DNA of 64,000 nucleotides. Origin: Monocercomonoides exilis PA203. Its lineage: Eukaryota; Protista; Preaxostyla. Both the position numbers and the translations under genes were made by a program. Under the pieces are notes generated by a model. It ran no database searches and was not told the origin of the DNA. It saw only the letters and a list, made by a program, of their open reading frames with translations. Location of the stretch: contig LSRY02000029.1 in NCBI GenBank assembly GCA_001643675.2, positions 930,001 to 994,000 of the forward strand, in the 5' to 3' direction. The first letter of the stretch is position 1. The number at the start of each line of letters is the position of its first letter. Of this stretch, positions 21,441 to 52,475 are shown piece by piece.

Positions 21441-22599
21441 TCTCCTTCCTCTTCTTCTCCTCCTCCTTCACCTTCTTATTTTCTATTATTCACTCAGAAA
21501 TAAGCAAAAAGAAGACAAAACATTCTCAATGTTGACAATATATTTGTTTCTTTCAAAGAATGTTTTGAAATAAAATGAATGGAAAAAGAAACAGGATATG
21601 GATGGAAAATGAGGTTAGTTGATGAAGCAAAATCATATTTTGAAGAAAAATTGAGAATACAAAAATCGATAAATAAAGAAAAAAAGAGAAAGAGGAGAAA
21701 GATGTGTTGGAGGAAGAAGAAGAATAGAAGAAGAAGAAGAATAGAAGAAGAAGAATACGAAAAGGAGGATGTCAATGCCAATGAAGAACATGGCAAGGCT
21801 TTGCTATTAACTCCCTCCTCTTCGCTACCGTCTTTTGAAACTGTACCAATCAATGTCCATCCCCCAAAGGAAGATCAAAGCAGATCGCCTTTTTTGAGTC
21901 GTTCCTCCACAGCTTCATCCACAACAGCCATCGCAGCAGCCGCACCATCTGGGACGACTCCAACCGCACTTCTTTCTTCTCCAACACTGACTGTATAATC
22001 TCCACTGGAAGCTTCAGCCCAATCTATTCCACTGCCACCTTCGATACTGTATAAAGCTCTCGCTTTAAGTTGTTCAGCGCATCTCACTGTCTTCACAATC
22101 TCATTTTTCAAAGGCTACAGATGAGGATTTTTCAGATCAGCTTCATCACAAACATCTGGAAGCTGCTTATTCCTCTGAAGTTCAGTATCAATCCAAGAAA
22201 CGCAGAAACATTTACCACTCCCATCTTTGACAATATCTTCTCAAATCCACAAAAAACATTTTGATCTTCTTCTCCTACACCCCTTCTAACGCAATTCAGT
22301 TGTCAGGAAAACTCCAATTCACCTCCAGTTTACTCCCTCTGCACAAATTCACCAAATAGCCACATCCCTGCAAAGTCCTTCCGGAACAGCTCTTCCCCAA
22401 ACATTCTTGTCAACCGCACCACCTCTTTCTTCAATTACTTTGAGAATTTCTCCCCCAGTCATATATGAATAAAGTCCGCATGGACATGCCTTAGAAGCAC
22501 CGCACCTTCCATCCAAGCGCCCTAGTCGCTCAAATCTACCAATATCTTATCTCTATTTATTCCCTGGATCTTCGGCAGCGTCCACGCCCGTTTCTGTTT

Positions 22600-24300: not shown

Positions 24301-25024
24301 TTAAAGAAAAAAAAGAACAGAGTCAATTCGAACAAAAAAAAATGTGAAAATGAAAAAGATGACCGTAAGAAATATGGAAGCAAAAGAGACATTGAATGTG
24401 ATTTATTATTTGAACTCAGAAAACAAGCATCAAGTTTATTTTTTTTATTTTTTTTTATTTTTTATATTGGAATGTTTTCAAAAACATGTCGTAATTGAGC
24501 ACCATTTTCGTAATTGTCGTTTCAATAATTGTTCAAAAAGTGCAACATTCTTAAAGAGATAGATTATTTATGAATAGTTAAAAGCTAACTTCCAAAATAA
24601 AAAACTCACATAAAAATTTTAAAGATATTGAATATTTTATCTTTTCAATTTCCAATAAAGGAATATGATAAAAATGAAGTGTCCATGAAAATAATTGAAA
24701 TGAAAATTCAAATCGAATGAAACGAAAACTCTAAAAACAATTGATAATACAGTTTGGCTCGTACAAAAAGATAATGAATTGGTAACAATGTAATTATGAT
24801 TAATCAGTCTAAGTTTATATGAAATGAATCAAATTGAAACTTAATAATTTATAATTAGTCAAATAAGCCACAAATTGAAATAAATGACAATACATGATGG
24901 GAACGGAATGATCAACATTTTCTGATCATTTGTGATCTGATTTTCAGATCAATTAATATTTTGTGACTTTTCAAAAAAAAAATACCCAAATAGAGGACCA
25001 TTCGAAATGTCTATAACCCTTTTG

Positions 25025-31660: not shown

Positions 31661-31805
31661 TAATCACAATTGTTTTGTAAACAAATGTTTCAGCATAAAT
31701 AAAGATGAAGATGTTTCTTATAGACCTTTTCGTTTTTCAGTGTTATTTTGTTTGATATTCATGAAAATTTTTCGAATCGAAAATTTTGACAACAAAATAT
31801 GAAAT

Positions 31806-32045
31806 GTCAAAAATTTTTTTAAAAGTTCTTTTTGTTGAATTTTCAAATAGAATTAAAATTACATATTTCGATCAAATTTCTGTTTCCACTCGCCAGATTT
31901 CATGAGAATGAATATTATTGCATTATCGAAAATTTGTTTCCATCACTGATTAATTTTGTCTATGTGAACAGAAATTTGATCGAAATATGTTATTTTTATT
32001 CTTTTTGAAAATAAAACAAAAGGAACATTTCAAAAATTTTTTGAC
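31806..32045. mobile_element. MITE 'M1' (240 bp, ~79-bp imperfect TIRs)
   Basis: GTCAAAAATTTT...CATATTTCGATCAAATTTCTGTT is inverted at 31967-32045. It is flanked by AAAT and ATAT, and its interior resembles MITE 51434-51670. Confidence 0.8.
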
Positions 32046-32699
32046 ATATGGCACTTTCTTTTTGAAAAATCAGATCTCTTCCCGTTATAGTTTTTTGTTT
32101 CATAAATAATAATGTATCACAAAACAACAACTGACCATTTATCTATTTATCACAAGCGAAACACATTTCTCAATTTTTGTTTTTTTCCGTGAACCTAAAT
32201 AGCTTTTATCAAATAATTTTTTAAAGGGAAATTGTGATGAAATCGATTTATCAAATATTTATCTATCCAAATAGTATTCAAGATTTTTTTATGTTGAATG
32301 TGATTCACATTTATTTAATATATGTCTCATGTTGCGTGTATGTTATGTGTTTGTTTTTTGCACGTTTTAATGAGCAATGTTTCGATTTTCTTCATAAACG
32401 AACCACAAGCCAAAGCTGTTCCTTTATTTACGTAAATCAATCAGTTATTTTATTTATGAAAATGTTTGCAATTATATTTATCAATTAATATCTTGAAATC
32501 AGTTTTTTTTAATGCATAAAAGATTGAATTGGAACTGGAAGATTCACTGTTCTTGTCTTTATTGTGAGGAGCAAATTGAAAGAAAGAAATGGCAGTTGTT
32601 TAACTTTAAGAAAAGGGAATGAGAGCAACCATGTTTCTGTTCTTTGTAACGATTGGAGCACCTCATTTATTTGATGAAAGCAAACTTCATTTTCAATCA

Positions 32700-33282
32700 C
32701 TGGATTATCTGAGTCCACTCATCTCATTATCTCATAGCACATATCATGCAAATACAGCCCCACTTCGATTGCTTTTCAAACTCCGACACTTCGTCCAAAT
32801 AATCAACTGCCACAATCGTTGTCACTTCCTCTGATTGCTCATGTCCAAATGGAAATGGAACAGGCTCACTTCCTCCTTCATCAGCGTTTGAGGATTGTGA
32901 AGACAAAAGGAAGGAGTGTTTGAGGTGGAAGGCACCTGAATTGCAGATGAACAAGAAGATGGGGGCAACAAAAGAATCAGTTGTGTTTTCGATTGGGATG
33001 ATGCTGTGGGAGTGTTTGACGATGCATATTCCGTTTGGTGATTATGAGGCAGAGGTGGCCGGGCAGAAGATAGCGAACAGGAAGAGACCCAGCTCCTCCA
33101 CAACGAAAGGAAGTTCGATCGTGGATATTATGAATGGATACTTATCGACAGAAGGGAATGTGAGGCTAACTCTTTTGTGCCTGAAGAAAGAGTTTATCCA
33201 GTGCTTTCCAATTTGAGAAGCTATTCTGACAGTCCCCGTATCAATTACAACCTGTAAACAACAGAGTATGGCAAACAAAGCA
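32700..33282 (+). pseudogene. Tyrosine-kinase-like kinase C-lobe fragment, ending at the insertion site of element D
   Basis: LRWKAPEL..VFSIGMMLWECLTMHIPFG..KRP corresponds to kinase subdomains VIII-X. No N-lobe is present. Confidence 0.8.
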
Positions 33283-35714
33283 GGCATAGGTCTAAATTGT
33301 ACCAGTAGCGAATTTGACGTTTTTTAATTATATTTCACTGTAATATTAATAAACGTAATTAATTAACTCTATATTATCGAGAAAATCTATGAAATTTAAC
33401 TTTGAAAAACAATAATAAAAATTCATGATCGGACCCATAAAATATTTATATATTTTTCCTTTTTAGTTTTATGTACTTATTCGCTCTATATTTTGAATAT
33501 AAAATTTTGCAATTGTCTTGTTTTTCTGTTTTTGCATGACTTCTACTCAAAAAGAATGGACTAGTTTATGTTTTGTTTTCTTTTTTTTTATATAAACATT
33601 CTGTGCATTTTGAAAAGAATGCATAGAATAAAAAATTTTTAATAAAAACCGTTTGAAAAACATTGCAATTTAATTGAGAAAAATTCATACACAAACCTTC
33701 ATTGTTCTCCGTCTTGCGATGTGGATGTTCCAGTGCAAAATTTTCTTGAATCTGTTTCCAACTCAACCTTGATCCCTCCACCACTGCCACTCACACACAT
33801 TCAATCGTCAATAGTCACATTCTGAACAGTAAATATCTTTCCAGCCTTCACACTCTTTGCAGCAGCCACACCATCTCCTTCAGTCAACTTCACATTCGTC
33901 ACCTTCACATTCACCAACATGCTCTCTCCTGATGCTGTGGCTGTCAGATACAGTGCAGATGACGACAATGAAGAAGAAGAAGAAGAAGAGAGATCCGGCT
34001 CAGAGAACAATGGTTTTGAGACATTCATATTTATGATCTCCCCATCAACCATCGACAGCTGTGACAGCGGCACCACAAACACTGACGACGACAACACATA
34101 GTTTCCTGTTTTGCTCGTGGCGATCACAACATCCTCCAATGAGAGTGACCCACCTCCATCAGACACCACAACCACGCTCGGTGAAGGATTTGCACTTGAG
34201 TTGCAATCAACCTTCAAATGACTCATTTCAAGATAACCTGTAGACACACTGAATAGCGCTCCAGTTGATGAAAGGGCTCCTGTTCCAATCGAACTCTTAT
34301 CTTTGCCTTTCCCAATGACTGAAATCTTCTTTTCTCCAATTGCAATGGTTGTTGCCTCACTTATGTGATCCCCGTCCATTAATGTGATTGCCAAACTAAT
34401 TTGTATCTCACACATCTCATACGCTTTCTTCACAGTCAGACAAGGAAATGCTTCATTTGCTCCACATAGCTCTAAATTGTCATTCCCATTCACTGACACA
34501 TAAATCAATTTGTCTTTCAGCCAATTCTTCTTTTCTGTGTGCTGACATGACAAAAAACCTGTATTTGCATAATTATATCCTAAGCACACTCTCTTGTCAT
34601 CTGTGTTTGTGGTGTAACATTCAAAGAATGGATTGTAAGACGAAAATAGGTTGTTAGCATCTTGAAAATACACATCATTTCCAAATGGAATGGAAGTGGT
34701 TGTACATTTGCATTCATGAAAGAATAAAAAATAGCAATAAACGCTGTAGCTTGGAGTTGTTTGTTGAGAGGTGTAAAAGTACAGTCCTCGGCCATGCGAT
34801 ACTGTTGAACATGAAATGAACGGTATGCTCCTCATTTTCAATGTGACTGGAATATTTGAGCAATTCATTCCTCCTCCATAATTTCTTGCTAGTGAGAAAG
34901 AAGAAAATGAGCATTCAAACACACAAGCACTCTCCCCTTTCCCACTTTCTGCTCCGATACATCCAGAACTAGAAACCTGAAAAGAATAAAGATAAAGCCC
35001 TCCTCCTATTCTATCTGCTTTGTATTTTAAAAATTCTCAACCACTGATCCTGACACACTCCTGAACCGGATAAACCATAATCTCTCCTCCTTCATCTTTT
35101 TCGGCAACACATCCATTGCACGAATTATTCTCAGCCTTGACTGAACTTATCGAATAGAAAAAAATTCCTCCACCATCACAATGCGCATGGCAATCATTGA
35201 ACGAACAAAATTTCACCGAAAGTGTTCCCGAACCAGGCTATGCATGTAAATCGCTGCTCCATTTGTTATTCCATCTGAAACTGAATAATTTGTAAAATTT
35301 GTTTTTGATCCATTCCTCTAATCCCAAAATAAAGAATTCAATTCAAAGGATGTTTCGCTTCAGACAAAAATTCTTTATCATCAAGCAAGAATCATATTTC
35401 GAATAGATTTTGATTACGAAAAATATTACACATATCAATTTAAATAAATAATAGATATACAAAGAATTATATTTTTCACAATCATTATCTTTGCTGATAA
35501 CAACCAAATTTCTCCATTTCACCCCAAAAACAAAAAAGGAAAAATATATTAATATTTTATGGGTCCGATCATGAATTTTTATTATTGTTTTTCAAAGTTA
35601 AATTTCATAGATTTTCTCGATAATATAGAGTTAATTAATTACGTTTATTAATATTACAGTGAAATATAATTAAAAAACGTCAAATTCGCTACTGGTACAA
35701 TTTAGACCTATGCC
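33283..35714. mobile_element. Non-autonomous long-TIR element 'D' (GG...CC ends, 8-bp TSD; Merlin- or MULE-like) with host-gene cargo
   Basis: 164-bp perfect TIR (33283-33446 / 35551-35714) extending to ~187 bp with few mismatches. Exact TSD ACAAAGCA at 33275-33282 and 35715-35722. Confidence 0.92.
33700..35300 (-). pseudogene. Beta-helix/Pmp-like surface protein gene fragment (cargo of element D)
   Basis: 373-aa open stretch (33801-34922) with YGGG, CYFLFFHEC..GNDVYFQD and IYVSVNGND..CG..PCLTVKKA. The upstream part is frameshifted and the 3' end is truncated. Confidence 0.8.
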
Positions 35715-38700
35715 ACAAAGCATTGCTATAAATCCTTCGGATGGAACATGAAGTTTGTTTTCTTATATGTGATCAAAAAATTTGTGATAATAATTTTTTG
35801 TTCTAAAAGCAACTTTAATGCATTCTTCGATACAGCCCAGAGTTTCACATTCACTTTTTGTTTTAGCTCATCATCACATTTTTTCTTTTTTCAAATATCA
35901 CAATTTTTTATTTTCGCATGTTGTATTTCACATTATTTCTTCTGTTATCCGTCAGAATTCTGATTATCATTTTGAGGTGTTTCTTGTTTTTGTATTTTCA
36001 TGTTTGAAATTCTCTTTGCCTAATGTCAAAAAAAATATAGCTCTTGTTGTTTTAGCAAATAAAAAATATGCAGTAAAAAAACGTTCTTGTTAATTAAAAA
36101 CAAAAAAACGAATGTTAAATAACTAATAATAAGTTGAGTTCCTGATTAATTTATTGACTTAATCATCATTCTCAAAAAGCTGATCCTTTTTTAATTTCCT
36201 CTTCCTTAACTGTTACCGCTTCTGCAAAAACCGCCAATCGATCTCCCTCCTCAGGATCCATTTCAAAAATATGAACTTCTTCCTCCACTAATTCCTTAAC
36301 CTCCATAACAACTTCCACTTCCGAAGCCCCCTCTTCTGTCCACTCCTCCCTTTGGTTTTACAAAATCATTCACCATATATATGCCTTTTCCCAAGTTCGT
36401 GGCAAAGTCATTTTCTCTGACACACAGCTTTGACTGCTCTGTGACAGTCGTAAGAAATATGCAGCTGCAATTGTCAAACGTTCGGATAAATGCTACTGTG
36501 TTTTCAGAGGAAGTATTAAAAACAGCTGATAGAAGACCAGAACAAAAACTCATGCGCTGCTCCAAATCATCAATTTCCGATAAGATCAATTATTGAAGTT
36601 AAAACAAACATATTGTTAGATTAATCCTTGAAAGGCTTCTTTTGTCTGAGTGCTGACGCAGCAGCATCTGTCGAGGAGAAGCACTGTCTCACAGAAGGCA
36701 TGCGCTCTTTCAAATCAAAAAAATTAATCGTTAGACCAGTTGCATTTGTAATAAGAAATTATTTTTGAATTGGTTTCGATCTCTTGTTATTTGTGCAACG
36801 CAAAGAAATAGCACTGTCAGCATATATGGTCGCTCTTTTTTTGTCATTAACAATTTCATTTTTCTTCTCACTGCATTTTGTTTAATCCTTTTCATCTTTC
36901 CAATTCTTATTCTTTTTCTCTTTTATTATCATTCTTCTATTTTCTTCAGTTTTTCATCTTCACTCAACTTCTCACCTTCATTCAACACAGTTCACACATC
37001 CTTCATCACCTCCTCCTAGTTTATCACCAGCAACATCGCAACAGATTTCAAGAACGACATCAGAGAACCTGATCCAGACACAATCAGCTTTGCCCCATCT
37101 CTTCCCGTTGCCCTTATCATTTGCGTTACCGATGGCTCCGAAATGCACTCGAAAATAATAGTACTCCACCTTAACCATCACCAGGTGGTATTGATCTGTC
37201 TGGTTGAAAGCATAATGCATGCGCCTCCTTGTCCACACCGCCCTGTTCTTTTCGAGAGAAACTTACTGGTCTCAGTATCTGTTGATACCTGCTACACAAT
37301 AATCAGATCTTCTTTCTGAATATCAATTCGTCGCGCTGCCACATCATATGCAATCAGCACCACAATGTTGTCCATCGGAAATGTCTGCATCGTCTGTTCT
37401 CTCTATGTCTGTGCGATGCAACAATGCAATGACTGGCTTCAAAAAGAATTTAACTCTTTGAACACGTGAAGCTCGTTTGATAAAGATTTCTATCAAGAAA
37501 AGATGAAGAACTGACTGTAAATTTTCTCAAAACTGTCCGATCTTCTCATTTCATTCATCTCTATTTTGATGCAAATGAGGCATTGTGAAAAAGAGGGATC
37601 GCCAGTAAAAAAATACTAATGAACACAAGTCCTAGAGATTCACACAGATCAAATTGAGCTTCTAGTGAAGAATGTGTTTGCACAGACGGTTAACGGACAT
37701 CGGTAATGAGTTCGAGAATGGATGGATTTCCTTGGAAAAACACACAATGGAGAGGTTAATGGATATGGAAGTTGGGATTGAAGAATAAAGAGAGGAAGGG
37801 AAAAAGAACGTCTGAACGGAATTGGTGTTAGCGTTAATGAGTGCTCATAGAAAGGTGTTGATTGTCACTTTTTTTATTATTGTATGAATGTTCTGCCATG
37901 TTCGCTTATTCTGAATCTTTCCTAATTATTTCTTTATACAGTATCCGAATGAATCCAAATTTTGGAATTCCACAACATTGTTCACATCATTAGCGAATCC
38001 AACAAACTGTGTCCCACCAATTACTTCTACAACAATATTTTATTTATTTCCTTTTTTCGCTTTTTTCTTCTTCCGCAAAAGAACGCTTTTAACTCGAGCT
38101 GCTCTCACTTGGGACCTTCCACAAATAGACGTTTCTTTGTACAATCAGCTCGATTAGAAGGCAGGGCTTTGCAACAACCACATCAGTTCTGCTGGATATC
38201 ATTAACGACTGCTTCATGATCGACGTCCCAATCCACACCTCCACGTCCGACAGCGCAACTTGTTTGGGGTTTCTAGAACGCTCATGTGAAAGCGAATGGA
38301 TCAGAGGACGCTACGTATTGCGGCTCTTCCTGAAAAAACATCATTGATCCTGTGGAAGGCCAGGAGTTGAAAACGATTGAACTGGAATGGGCAAAAAAGA
38401 AATAAGAAAATAAAGCCTTAATACTTTTTTGTTGACATATAAGAATTGCGCTTTTTGAAAATACAAACTCAAAAATGAATTCAAATTTGGATCTGATTTG
38501 AACTTCGAATTCTCTGGTTGGTATAAGAAGATGTGCATAAGGAACTTTTCATCAAGATGTCCTTCGCAATATATTCTCTTCTTTTCAGTCTTTGTTGTTC
38601 AACAATTTCTGTTTGAGAACAACAATAATTCATTCAAAAAGAAGAAAGAAAATTTTAACAAATAAAAAAAAACACGAAAATGAATTTGTAACAACAACAA

Positions 38701-39051
38701 ACGAAGAGATGTCAGAGTATTCCGTTTATATTCATTTCACTAGCTTCGAGAAATAGGTAATTTTTTTCAATCTGGCAAACATCTGACTTTGTGTTGAGGG
38801 AAGTGAATCGCAATGAGATTAATTCGAATTTTGTTCATTTTAAATTCTATTTGCAAATGAAAACTTCATTATTGTACGAAAGGAGTGCTTTTCTTGCATT
38901 GTTTCTTTAAAAAGAAAAGAATTTCAATTGATCTCTGATAAATTATAAAACAAAAAGGTAAATATTTATCAAAAGTCACAAATCTTTATTATTCCTGAAT
39001 ATCTGGACAACTTTCCGAAATAAAGAGCGATTAACGTTTTAAAACTTATAT

Positions 39052-39250
39052 GTCAAATATTATTTTTGAAAAATCAGAGATCTTCCAACAATTGTTTTCA
39101 TTCAAATTTTTAATAATATATTATTCTTCGACCAAGGTTCATTACTGGGCAAACGATATAAATAACACGATTCTCACATTTTGATTTTTTTTTTGAAAAA
39201 ACCAGAATAAGATTTTTCATTATAAATGCGAAAGGGAAATGTTTTGAGAA
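39052..39250 (+). mobile_element. Internal orphan left end of the same TIR family
   Basis: ATAT|GTCAAATATTATTTTTGAAAAATCAGA, with downstream sequence resembling 32050-32235. Confidence 0.55.
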
Positions 39251-40223
39251 CTTTACACACTTTCTTCTATCCATGATGCAACAGCGGTTTGTTTTGACTA
39301 TTTTTCATGTATATTCGGAACACATATTTTTGGTTGCAATTTAATTCCTAATTAGATAAGGAGGTGAAACAATGTGAATTGCAATCTATTTTTTATAAAA
39401 TGTTGAATTAATCAAAATCATTCGTGTTATTTTCTTAAACAATCATCAGTTTCATGCATGCTGTGGAAAAATTTTTATTTTCTTGACTGATTATTGTTCA
39501 AAATATTTATTTACGAATTGTTTATAAATATTCATTATCGCTCGGTTTCTTCAAGATTTGTAACAAACATACAAAAGAAAATAGATCATGAAGATTATTT
39601 GATACAGAGCAAACGAGCCATTGAATACGTTGCTACATGAAAAAAAAGAAAAAAGAGATGGCAATTGGCTCTATGATGGAAAAGCAGTGAATCCAGATGC
39701 TAAGGAAGAAATGTGATTCATTTTTCAAAGTGTGTCTTTCACATCAGAGTTGATGAAGATAGATAGCTTTTATGTTTCACAACTTTCGACAAAATGATTT
39801 TTTTATTGCACAGAATAACCAAGCTGGTCGCACGTCGTGATTAGCTGAAAAGCCTCAACATACTTTTCCATCTACGGATTACGGCTTCTTCGCTGAATCT
39901 CTATCTGCACGTGCACCGGCTCTGCCCCACAAAAGAGAAGTTTCAAAAACAGCTTTTCTCAATCAGCGTTCTTCAGAAAAACATGATACGAAGGGTTATT
40001 TTCACATGCATCTTCAAACTGATCGTCAACATCTTGCTCGATTTTGAAGAATGTGTAGATACCAACCTATAAGCGTGAATCAAGTAATGGAAGAAAAGTG
40101 AGTTACGAAAGGGAGGTTTCTGGTTAAAGATAGAGCGTGCCCAGAAACTGAATAAGTCCATCATTGCAGCTTCGGTGGAGACATCATTGTCTGCCCTAAT
40201 CGGTAATTAAGAACGGTCATTCG

Positions 40224-40324
40224 CTTTCTTCTTCTCCTTCTCCTTCTTCTTCTCCTCCTCCTTCTCCTTCTCCTTCTCCTTCTCCTTCTCCTTCTCCTTC
40301 TCCTTCTCCTTCTCCTTCTTCTTC
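40224..40324 (+). repeat. (CTTCTC)n microsatellite
   Basis: Visible hexamer repeat. Confidence 0.85.
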
Positions 40325-40825
40325 AATATCATACAGTTTGATGATCATTTAATACATCTTTCTATTTTTATTGAAGCTTCAACTCCAAATGATATTTCAA
40401 TAACTTATTCCTCTTCGTTTATCTATCAAAAAAAAAATTATGATCATCCTATCAGAAAAATATTTTTCCTGCTATCATTCCACAACTCAGTCAAAGACAG
40501 ATTTTCTCAAAGAAGCATATGCTGTGTGTCAAATTGACAGATGAAAGGCACAGACACTAAAAATAAAGAAGAAAAAGAAGAAGACGAAGAAGAAGACGAT
40601 GATGAAGATGATGATGAATTCAAACATGTTAATGCATTTGAACTCAATTCAGCATTCCCATCAAAACGCGTGTTTTGTCTGCACATCACTCCACTTTCAA
40701 TCACAGCTCACGGAAACATCAGCGTCTCTGTCTTCGAAATCAGCTCCTAACACTCCTCTCTCCCGCCTTCCAGCAGAACAACTACATTATTCCTCTTTAG
40801 ACAGCATATGAGGTGTTGAACAGAA

Positions 40826-41450
40826 TCACTTCACAAACTGAATCGGTTGGTTAAAAAGCTTTCGACTGCTGCCTTTCGGTTCTTTAGGAGAAATGGATCT
40901 TGCAGAAGAAGAACAGAATAGAAAGTGGTTCCTGTTGAAGGCGGAAGAGGCTGTATATTCTTTCTCTCCTTCAATTCTCGGACTATCGTCTTTTCTAAGC
41001 CTTTCTCGCTCTTTTTCTCTTTCTTCTCTCCTCCTCTTCCTCTCTCTCTCCTTCTCGTCCTCCGCCTCTGCATCAATTTCCTTCTCTTTCCCGTCGCCTT
41101 CCTCCGCTTTCCTATTCATTTCTTCCTCCTCCCTCTTATTTCTCTGCTCCTCCAATCTGCTGCTCCTCCTCACATCCCTCAGCTCCTGCACCTTCTGCTG
41201 CCTCTTCCTCTCTCTGTCTGCCCTCTCCTCTTCCAAGCTGATGGCAATGGCTGCTGCTAAACAAAGATCAGCAGTCGGATCTATGCCCATCGCAATAAAA
41301 ATGGCATCTGACTCAGAAGCATCATCAGCTCCAAACTCAGAAATAAGCATCGCATTCAGAAGAGACTCAAATTCTTCGTTTTCTTTCTCAGCGAAGATCG
41401 CTTCTTCTTCTTCTTCTTCTTCTTGATTCACTTCCTCCTTTCATTCTTCT
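40826..41450 (-). pseudogene. Host-gene fragment with an Rpn10-like ubiquitin-interacting motif
   Basis: MGIDPTADLCLAAAIAISLEEER (~41222-41290) followed by a charged coil. No vWA domain is visible. Confidence 0.45.
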
Positions 41451-42737
41451 TCCACTTCACTTGATCCATCCACCATTCTCCTCCTTCATCAGCTGCTTCT
41501 TTTCCGTTTCAATGGGAAAGTGCAACAGCAGCTTAGCTGTAGTGAGTCGATGCAGAACGCAGTACTCACACCGAGCGGTTACATTCTGTTACAGCAGTAT
41601 TTACACAAAGGGAGCACACAGCAGAATACGACGTGCAATGAGAGTGGAAGAAGCAGATAGCAGAAGAAGAACAATGAGAATGAGAATGGAAATGGGGATT
41701 GGAATGAAAGGGAACATAAGCATAGACATAGACAGAATGATCAGGAGATGATAGGTCAGATGGAGGATGAGGGAGAAGATGAGAGAGAAGATGGGAAGCA
41801 TGAGAGTGAAAATAATAGCAATGAAAAAATGAAAATTGCAGAAAACATCAATGGAAATGTTGAGAAAGACAATCAAAATGCAGATGAATCTGAAGCGAAC
41901 AGTTTAGAAGAAAAAAATGAGCAGGATTTGACGAAAAGAGAGCTGCATTCGTTGGATTATGATTCAAGAGAGGCTTGAGACATTTTGTTGACCATCATCA
42001 AACAAGATGAGCAGAAAGATGAAATGACAAAAAAAAAAAAAAGAAATGGAGAAGAAGATGAAGAGATAGAGTCGAAAGCATTTGAATGGCAAGAAACGGA
42101 AGACCATCAGCTGAACATGTGGGTGCATCACTTTGATATCGATGACTTCAGCGGGAACAGCCTCAAATTCGACCAAAGGAGAGGGAGGAGAAGATGGTAG
42201 AGAATAAAATACGACAAATCAATGGAAGAAAGCAACAAAGAATTAGCAGCTGATCATTCACACAAGAAAATTTCATCGCAAAAACCAGCTCAGAAAAGCA
42301 AAAAGCCGCTTTATGCGATACATTTGAGCGTGCGCGTTAGAGGGAAGTAAACTAGCTCATCTTTTGTGTGGATGAGCAGCTGTCAATAAGAGCAGTGCTG
42401 AAGAAGCTGGAAGTGTGTGTGAATGAACAGCCCTCGAGACTCTTCTTCAGGACAGTCGATCAACAGAACGTGTCGAAGCGCCACTCATTCCCAGCAAACC
42501 TGGAGGAGCTCATTGGAATGCTCATTGTCCCATAATATGCAGTGGAACAACGCTTATGCTCTTCCTTCTCTTCCTCTTCTTCACATTCTCCCTCTTCTCC
42601 TTTTCATTTCTTCATTCGTTTCAATTTTTTCTTTCCCATCACTTTTTCCTCCTGAATCACCCCTTCATCAGCATCTTCCTCTTCTTCAATGGATATAACT
42701 TCTTTTGTTGCATTGTCGTTGAATTGTTTTTGGTCAG

Positions 42738-45368
42738 TTAAAACTTTGCGGCGAATTGGCTCGATGTCAGAATCTTCAGTCTCATCGTAATTTTCGTTAT
42801 CATCAATATTTTCTGTTGAAAGCCGATTTGGAAAAATAATTCTTCCTTCTTCATTCTCTTTATCAATAACTTTCAACTTCTCTAATCTCCTTTTATATAA
42901 AGAAATTGTTGAGGACCCTGTTGAAACATCTTCTTCGCAAATGAATTGACGGCTTGTTGATTGTTTTTTGTTCAAACGAAAAACGCTTTCAAATGAGATC
43001 TGTCTCCATCTACTAACGGGAGAATTGAAAAAAGGAGTCACTTCAATTTGTGTTTTGGTGGATCTCCAACACAAATATGTTTTTATGTCCTTCACACCAA
43101 GCTTCAAGCTTGTCTTTTGCTTGATTCGGGGAGAGTAATCTATTAAGAATCTCTCCAATCTTTCATCCTCCTTTCTTTCAATTTTTGGGGATGCTTTTTG
43201 AAAGAAAGTTATCAAATCTTTGAGGGTGGAGATGTCCTTGCGAGATCTTTGAGCGATTCTCGCAAGGACTCCAAATTCCCCATCAACCTCGCTTTTCCCG
43301 TGACCTTCTCCGAAAAAGGAAAGCGAGGTTGTTTCAAATGTTTCATGAATGGAGGAAGACGGATGAAACAAAAAAAGAGAAAGCAGCCGTTTCTGAAGTG
43401 TGGACAGCAGTCTGTCCACACTTTCAGATGAGAATGAATGTTAATTGATGATTGCAAATTTTGAAGAGCTATCTTCAAACAATCGGTTGCAAATCTGCAA
43501 TCTTTGGACAGAATTTCGGAAAGGAAGTGGAAGCAAGTCTTCGATTTTCCATTCTTCTTGAAATGATGAATAATTACGCAGAGGTGTGATATTTCTTTTT
43601 TAAAATAATAATCTCTGCTTTCTTGAGTTTGTTTCACAGGCAAAGTCCAATTTTGTTTAAAATCTAATAAAGCCAAAAACTCATTCTCTTGGAGATTCGC
43701 TACTTCTTCATTAAACTTCTTTCGCTGAAATTTTTGAATTGTGCAATGAATATTAAGTGTTTCTATTTCTTGTAATTCTGATTTTGTTAAGATTTTTGTT
43801 TTTTCTTTTTTTTTTCAAAAATTCTTTTCTAACGCAAAGATTACACATACCGGTTCTTCTTTTTGCCTTTTCAATGTTAACTGCCAATCTGTAAAACAAA
43901 GATTTACAAAGTTTGACATTAATTTCATATTTCATTCTTCTTAATAATTCATCTTTTGAACCAAAGAATATCCTCTTTTCTCCTTTAAACCATTCACTGC
44001 GATTATCATCAATATTCTTGAAGGAATTGTTTGTCCACATTTCTTTTTCATATAATTTTCTATTTTCTTGAACAACTTTTTCACTTAATTTAAAATCAAA
44101 TTAAATGAATGAGTCAGGAAATAAAAAAAGTATATTAATTAATGTTTTAGTATTTTAGAAAACAAACTTATCTGATAACTCGGAAATGCAATCGTTGGAA
44201 TTCGTTAAATATATATCATTAAATGACGAATCATCAATCGCAGAAGTTGAAAAGCATGATGACAAAACAGGTTCATTGATAATTATATCAATATGACTGT
44301 CATAAGAAAAAGAAGAAACAGAAGGAGGAGGCGTTGAGGAGATGCTTGTTGGAGTTAGCTGAAAATGAGAAAATGGTGATGATAAAGTTTGAGAATGAAC
44401 AGAGCAGAATTGTTGATGTTTGAAGGGATGAATAAGATCTAAACGAAGTTTGTGATTGTTTTCTTTTGGTGTATATTCTTGATATCTTGATTTTTGTTGA
44501 ATTCCTGAATGATTATTTGTAATTATATCAAAACTATCCTTATGAAAATAATGTTGATCTTGATGAACAAGACAATTTTGTTTTGTGTGCTCAGATAAAT
44601 TCTTTTTTTTTTTTTGATAAGTTTGAACTTTGAAACGGAGTGTGTATTTGTAAGAGTTTGAATATCTTCATAATTATATAAAACTGGTGATGTTTGTTGA
44701 TCAATTGTTGTTGAATGATGGTTTGAGTTTAAGAATTCAAAGTCATCATCTGATAAATCTTTAAATACTCTCGTTTCTTGAATGTTTTGTTCTTTGCGGC
44801 TTTCACTTGTATTCTTCCTTTACCACCATTCACATATATTTAAATTTAAAAAACTGAATGCTGATGCATCCAAATAGCTTTAAATGAGAAATGAAATAAA
44901 AAACGAACGTTTTATTCTTCTGTGAATCTTCGGTTTGCTTTCAAAAGTTATTTCAAAATTGTACCTTTTCAACATTCGTTCAGCGTGCAAAATGTTGTTT
45001 GTTGTACAATTCCGGCCAGCTTTTATTAGTTCTGTTGAAGAAAATGATTTCAAAAATGTTTGTAACAAGAGTATTTTATTCTTTTTGTCTAATATATCGT
45101 ACAATAAACCAGCGTAAACAAGAATGTTTTCCATTTTATCTATTCAATCAAAAGAAGAGAAAACAAAAAATGAAACTGAATAAAATACATTGATATAACC
45201 ATTCAATTTATTGTTAAGCAATTCAAGAATTTCTTTTCCATTTCTTAAATGATATAAAAAGTGAAGAATGAAAGATGTTTCCTCATTCTTTGAATGAAGT
45301 TGAAGAAATTCAAATAGTATCTTGCACAGTTGAGACTTTCTGCTTTCAGACAAATCTGAAAACGTCAT
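42738..45368 (-). pseudogene. Sola2-like DDD transposase, frameshifted and probably intron-containing
   Basis: Ordered motifs CNLC..H (Zn-finger-like), LLDFKQNW..Q..SRDYY (D ~43663), VWTDCCPHFRN (D ~43411) and FFGEGHGKSEVDGEFG (D ~43283) are spread across frameshifted ORFs. Confidence 0.75.
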
Positions 45369-46249
45369 TTTTTTTAAAAAATAATATTATTCTGGGATAA
45401 TTTTTTGATCTTTTATGGGATCACAATTAAAGTTTTCCGACTTTTCAAAAAGAAAGTGCCATATGGGTCATTCTTTTTGAAAAGTCGCAAACGTTTAACT
45501 GATCCGAAAAAGAGATCGAAAATGATCAAAAAATGTTGATCATTCCGTTCCCAATATTGTTTTATAAATATTATTCATTGTTATTATTTACACCTTATCA
45601 TTGAAAAAACATTTCATAAATCTGATGATGACATATAAAACGTTAATTATTTTATAGAATACGCTTTTGTTAGCTTCTCTTTGACATACTTAATTCGAAT
45701 GTAAAATAAGTTTTAATTTCTTCAATTTCATTTCATTAGTTCGAATATTCGTTCAGAATTTATGGACATTTACGAAGTTTTTATTATTTTCTTATGTTGA
45801 AAGATAAATAAAATTTTGTTCACTTGAATAATTGAATATTTTTATAAAAAGTTATCAAACATGAAAAATTCATCACAACTTCATTCGAAACAATCGAAAG
45901 ATATTCAAAAAGTTGTTAACATAGAGCAATAATTATTGTTATTATAAAAAAAATTGAAGTTAGATGTATTTACTTTCAAAATAAATCTCCATTAATGACA
46001 AACTCAAAATAAATAGTCTTTTCTCACCTTGAATTTCAAACAGTTTGTTGTATCCAATTTGATTTCAATCTTTCAAGTTCCCTTTGAAAATATTTATCAT
46101 TTCATATCTATAAATGACAGAAAATACTCTTTTCAATTTTTTTTAACATCGATCAAAATATTTGCAGCTTCGTTACAAATTTTGTATTCTTATAAGAATA
46201 GCATTTTTGAATTTTTGCTACCGATGGTTCTGCGTCAGATGTGGAGTGT

Positions 46250-47150
46250 ATCTCAAAATGTTTCTTGAGGTGGGTGAAGCTCATCAATCGCCTCTTTGTA
46301 CTGTTTTTTTATATGTTTCAACTGTGTCATCTGAAGCAACACACTGAATTGATTTTCCGTTCCAATGGTAATAACAAAGAGGATTAGAAAAACTGTAACA
46401 GAAAAGGATATACCGTCCTTGTTGCCTTTGTAATTTCTGTCTGCAATTGACTATTTGATGTGAAGGAAGAAACGGAGTCATGTTTATTAGAAACATCTAT
46501 TGACAAATTCGATTAGAAGTTAGTGGTTTTTTTTTACAAGAAGCAGTTTTGATGTATGCACTACACATGCAGCTATCGCTGTAATTGCTAACGTTGCGAA
46601 AACTGCAGGCGTTTTCGAGGGGTGTTGTGGACGGAAGGAGATGCTGAATCTGAGTGTTACGCGCAGCTTTCATTGAAGCTTTAGGTCCAGCTAGCGTTGC
46701 CTCTTCCTTTGCTTGAAGCGCCGGTATTCACGAAGTCGGGGAGCAAGCGAATCATTACAGAAGCGGATGTGAAAGTGTTCTCGTTTATCATCTGATCTGT
46801 TTGTCCCCTTGCAATTTTTTTTTTGAGATTGTGCGGCTGGAATCGCGATCACAGCAGTTGTGGCGAATGGTGGTGAAGCTTGACAACGAAGTGATATGGT
46901 GAAATGTTGTTCAATGAAGGATGGAAAAGAGAGTGGAAAAGGCGCTGGAGGTGGGGAGGTTGACGATGGTGGATGTGGTTCTGTTGCCTGATACAATTGT
47001 ATTGGCTATACGGGAGCTGAGAGAAGAGGAAGAAGGAGGAGGAGGAGATGGAAATCGTGAGAATGGTTGTTATTCAACAGTGTCCAGGGAATGTGAAGAA
47101 AGAGTAAAAGAGAACCAGGTGAAGCTGGAAGAAGCAATGTAATCGCTGGT
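46250..47150 (+). pseudogene. Third, highly decayed copy of the element-C arm gene
   Basis: VVKLDNEVIW (~46870) versus VVKLDEEVMG (~20780), at a similar distance from a homologous terminus. Confidence 0.5.
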
Positions 47151-49689
47151 TGAAAAGGAGCATAAATTGGGAAGCCAAGGCTTGTTCATGTGATTGATTG
47201 TTGTTTCAATTATCGGAATTATTTTTGCTTTTTCCGTTGCTACCTATGCTTCTAGGGACTTTCTCCTTTGCCTCTTTTCACATATCTTCTTCTCTTCCTT
47301 CTTCCTCCTTGTTTTCTCATCCACCAACTGTAGATGTTGTCTAATCTAACTCTGAATCTTCCTTTTTGGCATCTCCATCAGCCACTGCAGGAGAACGAAG
47401 CGCTTCTTATTCAGTGTTTGCAACAGAATAAAAATTATCGTAACTAGCAGTACTTCTTCCTTCACTGTTGCAACTGCATCCACCAGAACCACCGCAAGAA
47501 TCATCAGTTTCTCAAACTTATTTACAGTAACCACGTTCGCCTGTCTCACTTGCTGGAATCTGTCCGCTGTTGGACAGATGCCATTGAATATGCCCATTTG
47601 TTGGAACTCGTGGAAATGCGAGTGGCTCTACAGCGTTTATTCTTTCGTCGGCTGATGCAGATTCTGCGCCTCAAGAAGTGTAGAAGAAAGAAGAAAATCA
47701 AGCATTCAATATGAAAGGAGATTTTGGTATTCGTCTTGTTGTATTTAAATAAGCAGAGCAATTCTAACCTCGGCTCTTTCAGAGCAAACAGATTCTTTTG
47801 AACGAACATGTTCTTTGCATTATTTTGCTCTTCTTCTGAAACTTTGTTCATCACCTTCCGAACAATGGGAACTGATTGTAGAACAAAGTTTGCTTCGCAG
47901 GAGCGCGCCCAGCCTTATTCCACATTTAGTGCAAAGATCAGCATTTCTAATTGGGTGCAGTGTGTGGCATCGGAGGTGATGATGCTGAGAGTATGCAGAG
48001 CAGCTTCATCTTAATGGAAGAGAATGACAAGCATGAGGAAGACGAAGCAGAGGTGATCAGAAGTGCGATGAAGAGGAGAAAACCACACAGATCAGAAGGA
48101 TAATTGTCGTTTCATCGGAATTCATCGGCTTCTTCGAACCGATCAGCATCACATTTTCCAGCTGCTTGTCACCCGCATTCTTCTTCTTCATCTTCTTTCC
48201 TCCAAACCCGCCTCTTCCACCCTTCTGGCGCTCTCTCGAAGCTCTGCTCGTCAGTTCAATATATTCTATTTCCTCAGATGAAGCATAAGAAGAAACAGAA
48301 GAAGAAAAAATAGCTGCAGCTGTTAAGTTAGCCTTTTCCCCCTCTCTCAAACTACACTTTTCTTGACTCTATTTCGACTGTCAGCAATCGCATCGTTCCG
48401 CAAAGCTGTAGACAATAATTCTTCTGGATGGTCTTCCCTTTTAAAGAGAATCTCAGCCCCATCCTCATGTTAATGCATTTCCAACAGAAGCAGTAACACA
48501 ACTGCAGCATCTGCATGTTTGGTGAATACAACCTCAGAAGTTCATCGTTATTAACTATTCCATTCATCTCGCAGTCTGCCTCAAGCTGCAACTGCTCTGT
48601 TGCCATTTTGAACGTCATTACCCACCTCGTTAGCTCCTCCCGCTCTCCTTCAGCGTGCCATGAGCCCTGTGATGTTTTTTCTCTTCCTTTCACAAAACTG
48701 CCTTGAAAGATAGAGACGAAAGCTCGCTTCTCCTACCAGTCGCCTCGCTATCTTTCGACCCGCTTTAACTTCCACCCCTTTATTTCCCAAAATAACACAA
48801 ATTGCAGTTGAAGAGAAAAATGAGACAGCAGACTCTGTCTAAAAACACTCCCGGCATTGATGGAGTTCTTCATCAATCGCTAGAGGTTGATGGAGTGTTC
48901 GATGTGAAGAAGGGTTTTGAAGCGGTTGCACTGTTGAACACACTTGGAATGGCTGTTTCACTGGTGCATCATTAATTTTTCTGATAATTTATGTCTTGGA
49001 AGAAGTGCAAACCACACTTGATGGTTGAAATTTCCTTCAGGTTGAGGACTGTGATGAAAAGGAAATGAGAGCCTTGGTTTTGATTGGAAATAAACTTGGA
49101 AGAAGAAGAAAGAGAAGAAGAAGAAGAAGAAGAAGAAGGGAAATCCCAGGATGCAGAATCGCTGTTGCTTGTTACTGTATGTTCAAAGTGTGTGACGCTG
49201 TTCAATTGGAGTGAATCATAGAGAACGTGGGATTATCCTGTGTTCATGTCTGAAATGCATTAACTGGTGGAGAGTTGGACGGAGCAAGAGATCTTTGGGC
49301 ATATTCAGTTGAGGAAGGGATGATACAGCAGAGAGAGATGATGGACATCACGTATAATAAGAGGAGGCTGTTTGAGGAGAAGTAAAAGGTGGTGCGGGAG
49401 TGATGTTACAGGAATTTGAAGAAGAAGAAAAAGAAGAAATATTGTAATATTCAGAGTTTTTCAAGGAAGAAGGAAATATAGAAAAGACGGATGGAAAGTT
49501 GTGAAAAATCGGAAGAGGAAGAGGAAGAGGAAGAGGAAGACGAAGAGGAAGAAGAGAGAATGGAAAGAATGGAAGGAAGAAAAAATGTGAATGGGAATAA
49601 ATATTCAGAATCTGATAAAGGGCTATCACATTTTTGTGCAGGATAGAATGCAGAAAATGATGACAAGTTTGTTGTGATATGCGCTGTTG

Positions 49690-50760
49690 TTTCGTAGGAA
49701 AGTGAGAGTTGATTGTTTTGCTGAAAGCAACGAATGCGACAGGCCTAGGATGCCATGGGGATGCGTTGATACGGTTGTTTCGTGCCCTTTGAATGTGTTT
49801 ACGTGGGAACGGGAGCTGCTGCAGATGTGCTAAGAGTCTTTCAACAACATCTTATCGCATCGAACACTGCATTCCAGAAAATGTGGCATCTTCCGAGGTT
49901 AGAAACAAAGATTATGTTAGTATTTATCTCTATCCGCTTCGCGTCAGAGTTGACTTTTAGTGCACAAGCATTCACCCTTTTGATTCTTCGCATTCTGAAT
50001 ATGTTAAATTTTTGGCTTCTTCTAATGATGTTCAAAACTTTTCCTCACCGAATCAGATAGAAGGTGTGCAGGGAAAATGCCTTCTTTTTTTCTGTCTGCT
50101 TAATAGAGTGCTTCTTTGCTTGCGCTATAAATCATTTTCCAGCTGTTATCGAAAGCGATGAAATAGATCTTTCAATTTCATTGAAGGTTCATTTAAAAAT
50201 ATTCAGTGATTCCTTATTCATCGATAATTACAAAAATGACAAAATAGAGGAGATCGTCTATGCCCAGTTCACAAAATCCATTTGCAACGTACCATTCTGA
50301 ACAATGATCAGCTCAGCGGTGAATGCTGTTTCCGTTGATTGCCCGCTCCAAAAAGATATGTTCAGTCTGCTGACGCTCATTCCTCCAGCTCCACTTATCC
50401 CAACAACCTTGAACCACTGTTATTCGGATGAGACGAGTCACGCACAAGATCAAAGTACCTGTCAGTCAATGTGCCTGTTGAGACTGAAAAAAGAGCCAGT
50501 CCAGATGCTTCAGATTCTGTTTGGATTGCTGTGCTCATATTGCTTTGGCCATAAACAGAAAAAGTGTCTGTTCCACAATCAAAACTATTTGTTTCGATTA
50601 TCGTACATGAAAGGAGTTCAACATTGGGAACCAAGTCTGGAATGTGTTGAGTCAAACAATGGTTAATTGTGATGCAGTGATAGCTTTCATAAAGTCAACG
50701 TGCATCTGTGTCTTTTGCATTATGTTGCATTTTCAATGAGGAAATAAATCTGATTTTTCC
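49690..50760 (-). pseudogene. Decayed beta-helix/Pmp-like family fragment (cargo of element B)
   Basis: FSVYGQSNMSTAI..ALFSVSTGTL resembles ISVIGKGKDKSSI..ALFSVSTGYL of the element-D cargo. Several stops are present. Confidence 0.6.
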
Positions 50761-51433
50761 AAAATCATGAGGAAGTCATTCGCTTTAATCAATGATTGAA
50801 TTGAAATAAGTGCAAACTCTATGTGATGTTTCCCTGGTGGAATAGCAACTTGGATCAACGATATTTATTGTTGAGCTATGAAGGGCAATATCGTGTTCGC
50901 TTTTTATGTATGTATTATTGTGTGAAAATGCAGTAATTTAGCAATGTTCCGCTGTTGTAATTTTGAATTTCAATGTCGGTAAACCATCTTCCACATATGA
51001 AATAGAAATTTTTAAAGAGATAACTCAAAATAACATCTTGGCAGTGATGTTCCAACGCAATTTCTCTTCTCGAGATGAAGATGAACACAATAACATTCCA
51101 ATAAAGTGTTTGAGAAATCAAACTAATTTTTCAATTTGAAAACTCTTGAAATCGATTAGACCAGAAATGTGTTGCAAAAGAGCAAATCAAATGAAAAACA
51201 ACAAGTGCATTTTCACCAGAAAATCAAATCTTAAATTGATCTGAAAAATAATATCATAATAATTTTTGAACATCAATTTTTTTCCGTATGAATCGGTTTT
51301 TCATTTGTAAACACACATGTAATAAATTTTTTCGAATATTTTCGTTAAATAATGGTCACGGAGTGTTTTTGAATTAACTGCCATGGGACAAATTTTTGAT
51401 CTGCAGCGACTTTTCAAAAATAACGACCCATAT

Positions 51434-51670
51434 GGGAAATTCTTTTTGAAAAGTCGCAAATGTTTAATAAAAAAAATCGAAAATTTCATATTTTGCTCAA
51501 ATTTCTGTTTCCACTCACGAATCTTCCAAAAAATGTATGAAATAGCATTATCCAGAAATATATTCCATATTAGTGAAGTTCGGTTGGTGGAAACATTAAT
51601 TTGAGCAAAATATGAAAATTTTGATTTTTTTGAAAAATAAACATTTGCGACTTTTCAAAAAGAATAACCC
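51434..51670. mobile_element. MITE 'M2' (237 bp, ATAT TSD)
   Basis: GGGAAATTCTTTTTGAAAAGTCGCAAATGTTT...AAACATTTGCGACTTTTCAAAAAGAATAACCC, with ATAT on both sides. Confidence 0.88.
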
Positions 51671-51862
51671 ATATCAAAAATAACCACCCCATATTTTTAG
51701 ATATTTCAAAAATATAATCAAGAATTCAATGCATGGGTAATTATTTTTGTATCCATATTTTCTCGATCAAATTTTTTTTTCTGAGAATTCACTATGAATA
51801 CTGTATAATCTATTTTGAAAAGAAATAAATCCTTTTAACTATTTTTTTCCTTGAATATGTGC

Positions 51863-52046
51863 GGGAAATTTTGTGACTACAAGCTTTTTCAATGAAAAAT
51901 TGTGAACTTTTTGTTGACTTGTTGTGATCAAAAAATATTTATAAAACAAGTCCATTTTTTGACATTCATGAAATGTCAATGAACTTTATGTTTTGATTTC
52001 AATGATACCTGTTCGAGGATATGATAATCCAATTTATTTTGAAATC
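51863..52046 (-). mobile_element. Partial inverted copy of MITE 28729-28995
   Basis: The reverse complement aligns by eye to ~28810-28995 (GATTTCAAAATAAATT..CATATCC..AACAGG..TTGAAATCAAA). Confidence 0.6.
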
Positions 52047-52475
52047 ATATTTTTTCATTCATAATTTTCTGTTCAAAAACTTATCTTGAATATCAATTAA
52101 AAAAAGTTGAAAAGTGAAAAGGCTTATTGAATGCATTTTAATCTTCGATTCGGAAAAACCATTTGTTTATAATAACAATTATCATTCTTTTTCACTTTTC
52201 AAATAAAATTTTTCTTTCAAAAACCAACAATCTTTGAAAAATCAACGCCCAGAAAAAAGATATGATAACAAAAATAGTCACCCATTTATTCATTTATATT
52301 TTTAGTAGTGGAAAACCAGTGACGGACGATGTGTATTTTTTCCCTCACATCACTCATTCCAAATTGCTGTGCTCCTTTTAATAAAAGAGATTTAAAATAA
52401 AACCATGAAATATCTATTCCAAATGTTATGGTTCAGACCATAACTTCATAATGCAAATTATATGTGTGATCAAAA

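Follow-up and report, generated by a model that had tools for sequence, protein, structure and literature searches.

How did four transposable elements come to stand end to end, with one 4-bp target copy at each joint? The question arises from the window, the whole 64,000-nt stretch of DNA analysed here. All coordinates given below are positions in this window, and M1, A, B, M2 and M0 are the names of elements within it.

The train and the element that it interrupts

Direct reading of the sequence gave the order AAAT - M1 - ATAT - A - ATAT - B - ATAT - M2 - ATAT over a length of 19.9 kb. The first-pass annotation had described an end-to-end train of four units, with a single ATAT at each joint, matched termini for each unit and no spacer DNA. 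The reading confirmed all of these points: zero non-target bases lay between neighbouring units, one ATAT was present at each boundary, and every unit possessed inverted termini of its own. The leftmost target copy, AAAT (31802..31805), is one base away from ATAT, and H-type copies have ATTT at the same place. It is followed by M1 (31806..32045), the terminal core of which had been described as degenerate. M1 is no degenerate copy: it represents, at full length, a distinct subfamily of 240-bp MITEs whose tips are GTC...GAC, and has full-length (1-240) matches at many loci, with 78-87% identity, identical tips and mostly ATAT duplications. M1 shares the ATAT at 32046..32049 with A (32050..45460), an element of autonomous type, 13.4 kb long, the GGCACTTTC... 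tips of which are both kept in other copies. A is collinear with copies on contigs C17 and C34 at 94-96%. An unrelated element with 188-bp inverted repeats, 99% complementary, is nested in A (33283..35714), and is missing from the paralogous copy on C17. The next ATAT (45461..45464) is common to A and B. B (45465..51429) is non-autonomous, 6 kb in length, and has GGGTC... at its tips; its left end carries a long B-type terminal repeat found at 59 places in the genome, and its interior is collinear with loci on C76 and C1 at about 70%. B in turn shares the ATAT at 51430..51433 with M2 (51434..51670), a 237-bp M-type MITE 87% identical to the M-type consensus, and a last ATAT (51671..51674) stands between M2 and the tail of M0.

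The train lies wholly within the terminal repeat of M0, a fifth member of the family. The left piece of M0 (31663..31801) is the right half of a 256-bp H-type MITE, and ends at the insertion point within the terminal repeat. It showed 73-79% identity with H-type copies, matching their positions ~98-240, and M0 is without its left ~97 bp. The tail of M0 (51675..51690) comprises the final 16 bases of the interrupted terminal repeat, aligns with the end of H-type copies and fits the family end pattern. Direct reading and the H-type alignment both place M0's own right-hand target duplication, ATAT, at 51691..51694. With intact H-type copies used as the proxy for the empty site, removal of the train and one 4-mer rejoined the two M0 pieces exactly. 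The DNA between them consists solely of inserted DNA, that is, four complete family elements of four subfamilies. Read-contig 'joints' were rejected as evidence for the empty site, their sides being 20-30 letters long and lying in repeats. An insertion hot spot in H-type terminal repeats was also rejected, since the strict search for insertion at the AWWT site within these repeats gave just 1 match genome-wide, the train locus itself, plus look-alikes at C18:239830 and C21:1276641.

The train locus is a cluster, because a further H-type MITE (52037..52283) lies about 350 bp to the right of the train and a lone family left end is present at 51735, 41 bp from the end of M0. Elsewhere in the window, a solitary family member, C (19432..24987), which has terminal repeats of 101 bp and is flanked by the duplication AAAT/AAAT, served as the reference for the 4-bp duplication. 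The terminal repeat of C also bounds an element at locus L052 which encodes an 854-aa transposase ORF.

That repeats were wrongly joined in the assembly, and that the train is not real, is very improbable. The public reads, four runs in the form of short contigs, all come from one sample and bridge part of the train; among the matches listed no short-read contig crossed from B into M2, owing to the high copy number of the M2 repeat. However, independent short-read contigs were identical to the window at 50575-51433 (right end of B through the ATAT) and at 51647-51999 (right tip of M2, ATAT, M0 tail, ATAT and flank). The exact fit of the two M0 pieces also argues against misassembly, as does the recurrence of this geometry elsewhere, on other contigs, at 15 or more further loci.

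Family affinity and the predicted transposase

Recognisable family ends number about 3,200 in the 82-Mb genome, and the terminal motif is specific to the family, with 745 genome matches as compared to 0 for a reversed control. The target duplications are 4 bp long and about 50% of them are ATAT, which flanks 969 of ~1,925 ends genome-wide. In a tally of 100 ends, the target was ATAT at 52, AAAT/ATTT at 26 and another sequence at 22, and 17 of 20 sampled M-type loci had matching 4-bp duplications. For comparison with Sola1 we used the passages on this group in PMC3845634 (citing Bao et al. 2009) and the Repbase classification as outlined in PMC4455052. The former passages give a 4-bp duplication with AWWT consensus as the Sola1 hallmark, and the family duplications follow this consensus. 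The terminal repeats of the family, like those of Sola1 MITEs, begin with GG and have a common ...TTTTGAAA... core (PMC3845634). Set by eye and without gaps against the one Sola1 MITE repeat given in Table 1 of PMC3845634, the family repeat agreed at 13 of the first 18 positions. Large autonomous partners in the family also encode a predicted transposase with conserved acidic residues, which may be a further likeness to Sola1. The label 'Sola-type', given earlier, fits the duplication hallmark and the apparent likeness of the termini to published Sola1 MITEs. Judged from these features, the family would be best explained as Sola1-like cut-and-paste DNA transposons with a 4-bp AWWT duplication, about half of them ATAT. 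The Pfam match of the family transposase was DUF7869 alone, below threshold at 24.4 against 26 bits.

The transposase remnant of A (42604..45071, minus strand) is in three reading-frame segments, in frames -2/-3/-2 by tblastn, and the sister copy at L047 carries an uninterrupted 483-aa ORF. The remnant, too, matched DUF7869 weakly. Alignment of 10 relatives revealed four invariant acidic residues in the predicted transposase (D131, D215, E250 and D258). None of the 135 relatives found carried an informative name, Pfam analysis of the relatives gave nothing apart from a UCH domain in two, and a word-based protein search with the transposase gave 1 match. These searches were made with separate ORF pieces.

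Shared-target junctions and short-range clustering

The strict pattern recovered 13 tail-to-head junctions with a 4-bp spacer in the genome, 11 of which (85%) were ATAT, as compared to about 50% ATAT at all ends. Two more were found via shifted pattern matches and one in L034, giving 15 or more independent places. No tail-to-head junction in the genome had a spacer of 0-3 bp, and spacers of 5-34 bp gave about 0.5 junctions per length against 15 at 4 bp. Small MITEs also form junctions with one another. Of 10 CC-flanked ends that were fetched, just 1 was a hidden junction. In a census of nested insertions, which counted any left end with a second left end following it by no more than 225 bp, there were 65 matches, some of them internal look-alikes. 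The joining of units by re-use of one 4-bp target copy is supported by these data. Chance, already judged unlikely in the first-pass annotation, is excluded as the source of such joints: in the genome, the sequences across A|B and across B|M2 each occur once, and the reversed control pattern gave 0 junctions.

H-type plus M-type pairs recur at loci L001, L002 and L004, an observation which raised the idea of a single ancestral composite that arose one time and was afterwards multiplied or relocated as a unit; no support for it was found. The recurring H|M pairs differ in spacer (ATAT or ATTT), partner length and flanks, the A|B and B|M2 junctions of the window are single-copy, and across the genome the junctions vary in contig, partner subfamily, spacer and flanks. 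As partners and flanks differ, the junctions are not one copied block, and an ancestral composite is the least probable of all the explanations weighed.

Counting the junctions against ATAT frequency, a check proposed in the first-pass annotation, gave a clear excess: 13 ATAT junctions were observed against 0.95-1.6 expected, or 8-14 times random ATAT use. ATATs located 1-30 bp from an end had received 8 insertions against 0.83 expected (9.6 times), those at 31-60 bp had received 3 against 0.52 (about 6 times), and at kb scale the enrichment was about 1.5 times. In terms of occupancy, 1.6% of duplications, 1.2% of ATATs at 1-30 bp and 0.7% of those at 31-60 bp were used, the genome mean being 0.12%. 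The proposal that insertion prefers the target beside family ends was therefore borne out as to the excess of junctions but not as to the duplication, which was used about as often as ATATs 1-30 bp off. Since nearby ATATs are enriched about equally, the duplication itself is not specially recognised; short-range clustering accounts for the effect, and the duplication is merely the nearest good site. With counts as low as 13, 8 and 3 events, the duplication might still be preferred by an additional factor of 2-3.

The explanation that we consider probable, on balance, is serial passive target re-use, in which one 4-bp site in insertion-prone DNA was struck repeatedly by the process known as 'double insertion'. 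The H-type MITE M0 was interrupted at a 4-mer in its terminal repeat. Every insertion would duplicate the target and place a fresh ATAT on either side, and one ATAT copy could then be re-used when the same transposase, or a related one, made another insertion, so that k elements would leave k+1 target copies. As the target count would rise with every insertion, trains would be self-reinforcing. The excess over random ATAT use would come from the clustering of insertions around resident copies, at distances of up to a few tens of bp; local DNA that is insertion-prone or insertion-tolerant may be the cause of this clustering. The CCC/GGG tips of the elements may help slightly, as they resemble a mild C/G preference beside the target: C was present at position -1 of the target in 26% of cases against a background of 19.5%, and CC in 7.4% against 4.5%, over the whole genome. 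A strong CC-ATAT-GG target mimicked by the element tips was considered. C at -1 reached 36% in a first sample of 100 ends, but the idea was rejected, since the whole-genome values are too weak for the excess.

Alternatively, transposase bound to a resident terminal repeat could capture adjacent DNA, and family ends would then actively attract insertions. We regard such homing as unlikely, though first among the alternatives to passive re-use. The enrichment of 8-14 times up to about 30 bp, falling to 6 times at 31-60 bp and about 1.5 times at kb scale, covers the kind of distance to be expected of a tethered protein, the excess of A-type and B-type ends in junctions is strong, and there is precedent in IS30, which inserts beside its own inverted repeats (PMC9333248). 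On the other hand, the duplication has no advantage over ATATs at a distance of 5-30 bp (1.6% vs 1.2%), H-type terminal repeats seldom take an insertion at their AWWT site (the 1 strict match noted above), and the spacers of near neighbours are often runs, such as ATATAT or ATATATAT, which point to intrinsically good TA-rich targets.

Over-representation of large elements is a feature which the purely passive model does not predict. Of the 13 A-type ends, 4 lay in junctions, as did at least 4 of the 59 B-type ends, compared to about 1% of all family ends. Age was rejected as its cause, because MITE copies (75-93% identical to consensus) are not younger than A copies (88-96% identical to one another). 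Transposases of A-type and B-type elements might be physically drawn to resident family ends by tethered target capture, a suggestion that we hold doubtful and place after homing in general. If it were true, autonomous and cargo-carrying Sola1-like elements would dock preferentially beside MITEs and build arrays, which would account for the A-type and B-type excess over the ~1% overall.

Selection offers another reading: insertion could occur at any ATAT, mainly those in or beside transposons being harmless and kept in a compact genome, with the clusters and trains, above all those of large elements, as selection's leftovers. It would fit the strong enrichment in junctions of large elements (A-type 9-17 kb, B about 6 kb), the position of the entire train inside another transposon, and the age of the copies, all of which are old (5-25% diverged). 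However, the enrichment fades within about 60 bp to about 1.5 times at kb scale, and selection would have to act at a very fine scale; junctions between small MITEs also speak against it. We consider this reading rather unlikely, behind both homing and tethered capture.

Passive re-use must also allow for the depth of the train. By arithmetic from the measured occupancy of 1.6%, one would expect 15 dimers to be accompanied by about 0.7 trimers and 0.05 tetramers. The strict pattern found one trimer, the train locus in the window. A four-unit train, with about 0.05 expected, is thus a borderline case under the measured rate.

Comparison with known systems

For a Sola1-like family, the locus indicates that a strict short palindromic target, together with its duplication, lets varied family members stack at one site into a 20-kb block, and it gives the process a measured rate, about 1-2% of end-adjacent ATATs being occupied, or about ten times the genome mean. 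Such stacks set different terminal repeats back to back, a substrate for composite elements, alternative transposition and the birth of tandem arrays. The large-element excess in junctions offers a concrete starting point for tests of how targets are chosen, or of selection in a compact genome.

Such build-up was not known, to the first-pass annotation, to have been described for Sola-type elements; the general principle is in print: tandem P, hobo and R1 elements and bacterial IS dimers have one target duplication at the junction, and tandems form at best-matching targets (McGurk and Barbash 2018, PMC5932611). The likeness of our junctions to this double insertion is close. All three window junctions have exactly one duplication-length target copy, events are independent at many loci, and the junction motif is the preferred target of the family, used more strictly than in single insertions (85% vs about 50% ATAT). 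The logic is also the same, as insertion preserves and duplicates its own target. The differences are that the window units are members of different subfamilies (two MITE types, an autonomous-type and a cargo-type element) and not copies of one element, that four elements are chained together inside a fifth, that the family concerned resembles Sola1 and has a palindromic target of 4 bp, and that the window train gave no sign of satellite expansion.

IR-targeting by IS30 (PMC9333248) is similar in that insertion occurs beside the ends of resident copies and yields end-to-end junctions. Unlike the window family, IS30 is a bacterial copy-out-paste-in element with an active IR-IR junction and orientation specificity. 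In the window family the spacer is the normal target duplication, and the site adjoining an end has no advantage over other good sites within a few bp; an IS30-like preference over equally good nearby sites was not found, although with these small counts there may be a modest excess. On present evidence, the train is not clear evidence for a new homing mechanism but a deep case of the known 'double insertion'.

Structure of the train and its host element

On direct reading of the sequence, the train comprised AAAT (31802-31805), M1 (31806-32045), A (32050-45460), B (45465-51429) and M2 (51434-51670), with ATAT after each of M1, A and B and a last ATAT at 51671-51674, in base-for-base agreement with the end-to-end geometry described in the first-pass annotation. 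Own inverted termini were present in every unit. The end of M1 had been regarded as degenerate, but M1 instead matches full-length copies of a separate 240 bp subfamily, with GTC...GAC tips and duplications that are mostly ATAT. The two copies flanking an element are often not identical: a single base separates them, in repeated cases with AAAT on one side and ATAT on the other (window 31802/32046; G000:C17:845815/857598; genomic loci L015 and L020). This mismatch is probably decay, but two trains have the AAAT/ATAT pair at their outer edge.

The train is nested inside a fifth family element, the H-type MITE M0. The segment on the left side of M1 (31663-31801, 140 bp) aligned at 73-79% with the right half of a 256 bp H-type MITE. 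What M0 lacks there, the 16-base tip of its H-type terminal repeat, lies past the last ATAT (51675-51690) and is followed by M0's own ATAT. Removal of the train and one 4-mer restored the H-type end with no base gained or lost, and therefore all 19.9 kb between is DNA inserted at one 4 bp site, where H-type copies have ATTT. Within about 350 bp of the train, on its right side, lie a lone family end (51735) and a further H-type MITE (52037-52283).

The public reads carrying train DNA came from four runs of one sample as short contigs, and were compared over 46000-51999. One contig agreed with the window over 50575-51433, from the right end of B to ATAT, and a second was identical to 51647-51999, covering the M2 tip, ATAT, M0 tail, ATAT and flank. 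As M2 is repeated in very high copy number, the B|M2 junction is bridged by none of the contigs listed for 46000-51999. The contig joints listed have sides of 20-30 letters within repeats and are uninformative on empty alleles.

Nesting was also seen elsewhere. At G000:C18:239830-239900 and G000:C21:1276641-1276702, a family element apparently lies inside the terminal repeat of another member, with a 4 bp duplication and then a 15-20 base tail of the host repeat, the geometry of M0. Family elements are nested within M-type MITEs at L015 (C1:741886-742305), L024 (C1:2458387-2458786) and G000:C5:1066828-1067025, these cases including a 7 kb B-type element within a MITE. Left-end-to-left-end pairs at most 225 bp apart numbered 65 genome-wide, some being internal look-alikes. 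A large near-perfect palindrome (56883-58292) has 418 bp arms (56940-57357 and 57560-57976) of 99.8% identity and is centred on an H-type MITE (57330-57586). Its right arm is interrupted by another inserted H-type MITE (57977-58231, AGAT/AGAT duplication), past which the arm similarity resumes (56883-56943 versus 58232-58292).

Identity of the family and its large elements

The terminal motif common to the train units, GGNNNNTTNTTTTTGAAAAGTC, is specific to one repeat family, with 745 places in the 82.3 Mb genome and none for the reversed control. AAAT stands unaltered on either side of the solitary relative C (19432-24987), whose terminal repeats are 101 bp long; this places the element tips at GGG...CCC and gives a duplication length of 4 bp. 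Matching 4-mers were present on both flanks in 17 of 20 sampled M-type loci. At 100 ends the 4-mer was ATAT in 52, AAAT or ATTT in 26 and another in 22, and genome-wide ATAT flanks 969 of about 1,925 ends. AWWT is described as the hallmark of Sola1, and GG and a ...TTTTGAAA... core appear, on comparison by eye, to be common to this family and the one Sola1 MITE terminal repeat compared from the literature (PMC3845634). Judged on its AWWT-type duplication and termini, the family is provisionally filed as Sola1-like.

Between subfamilies A, B and C, transposase identity is 38-41%, and D131, D215, E250 and D258 are invariant in the alignment with distant relatives. A D-x-C-x-x-C...H motif, which precedes the first putative catalytic aspartate by about 60 residues, is invariant in 10 of 10 aligned relatives (L047:1498-2949 and relatives) and is a possible zinc-binding DNA-recognition module. 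Pfam returned DUF7869 alone, below threshold, and the protein-language search agreed; the 135 public protein relatives include none usefully named. Two of these (P0085, P0143) have a ubiquitin hydrolase (UCH) domain at the C-terminus. In this genome the transposase motif region is shared by over 100 long open reading frames of about 1,000-1,400 aa, spread over many contigs.

A is a defined mobile unit: both tips were found at 13 genomic places, and its body is collinear with copies on contigs C17 and C34 (94-96%). It contains a nested unrelated element (33283-35714), which the C17 copy is without. The copy in the window is probably inactive; its transposase is broken into three frame segments, where a sister copy has an uninterrupted 483 aa ORF. 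B bears the long B-type terminal repeat, present at 59 places, and its interior is collinear with two other loci at about 70% identity. A module of about 700 bp in B (50250-50950) occurs at 40 or more genomic places with 74-79% identity, many on contig C1, and could be a gene-family exon or other captured repeat.

Junctions and short-range clustering

Junctions were counted genome-wide, by spacer length, as places where the half pattern for a left end comes after that for a right end. There were 0 places at 0-3 bp, 13 at 4 bp (11 ATAT, 1 ATTT, 1 AGAT), 17 at 5-34 bp and 8 at 35-64 bp, 2 of the last in the window; reversed-pattern controls gave zero at every spacer class. Two of the 17 places are true 4 bp junctions with a T run one base longer, leaving about 13-15 over thirty lengths. 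One extra 4 bp junction outside the pattern (L034) was seen among sampled flanks. The 11 other strict junctions differ in contig, partner subfamilies (H, M, A-type, B-type, others) and flanks, and therefore the junctions are not one fixed block copied around the genome.

Ends marked by the half pattern number about 3,180 (3,707 matches less 531 control matches), and ATAT has a frequency of about 0.008 per base (about 661,000 sites). With left ends carrying ATAT duplications assigned randomly among ATAT sites, 0.95 would be expected to land on the target copy adjoining a right end, or 1.6 once flank preference is allowed for. The count against ATAT frequency suggested in the first-pass annotation gave 13 ATAT junctions, an 8-14 times excess (P < 1e-7). 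Rebuilding of a strongly preferred CC-ATAT-GG target by the CCC/GGG tips accounts for a factor of about 1.7 at most, since the flank preference is mild (C at -1, 26% versus 19.5% background; CC, 7.4% versus 4.5%).

The underlying phenomenon is steep clustering of family insertions at short range. At offsets of 1-30 bp, where the flanks sampled hold 0.44 ATAT sites per end, 8 were observed versus 0.83 expected (9.6-fold), and at 31-60 bp, 3 versus 0.52 (5.8-fold). Occupancy per ATAT was 0.7% at 31-60 bp, against a genome mean of 0.12%. At the kb scale, further family ends had about 1.5 times the average density in 14 junction-centred 10 kb loci, by our count. Of the earlier proposal that insertion is preferred beside family ends, the roughly ten-fold local excess stood; specificity for the duplication itself was not supported, occupancy being 1.6% there versus 1.2% at 1-30 bp. 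The 4 bp spike is explained by the good target that every duplication supplies at that position, not by special recognition. Among the near neighbours, several have spacers such as ATATAT or ATATATAT, an indication that TA-rich micro-regions make strong targets.

Chain depth and comparison with known systems

At 1.6% occupancy per end-adjacent site, with k insertions giving k+1 target copies, about 0.7 trimers and about 0.05 tetramers are expected from 15 dimers. The sole trimer by strict pattern is the window locus, a tetramer when the GTC-type M1 is counted. The four-unit train is the tail of the distribution produced by the same process. Large elements make up only a few percent of ends and are involved in 6-7 of the 15 junctions; A-type ends were in junctions in 4 of 13 cases and B-type in at least 4 of 59, versus about 1% of all ends. 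Age does not account for this excess: M-type MITEs are 75-93% identical to consensus, the best relative of M1 is 87%, and A copies are 88-96% identical mutually. The excess could reflect selection, whereby large insertions persist only next to or within other transposons, or it could be an end-seeking tendency of the transposases of those elements.

Bacterial IS30 is known for active insertion beside its own ends (PMC9333248). Such behaviour predicts, as its defining mark, more use of the end-adjacent site than of equally good sites nearby; this was not seen in this family, within the limits of small counts. The mechanism that best fits the train is the 'double insertion' model, in which an element that prefers and duplicates a motif keeps its target, so that tandems with one duplication between arise readily, preferentially at best-matching sites (PMC5932611). 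Each insertion would duplicate the preferred motif and preserve the target, on which the next element would stack with one duplication between. The three features of the model that are open to testing were all seen here. The observation of the train is confirmed and extended. The principle of stacking on one duplicated target is already described; what is new is that the family is Sola1-like, that one chain combines four subfamilies, how deep that chain is and that it lies nested in a fifth member, together with the rates measured.
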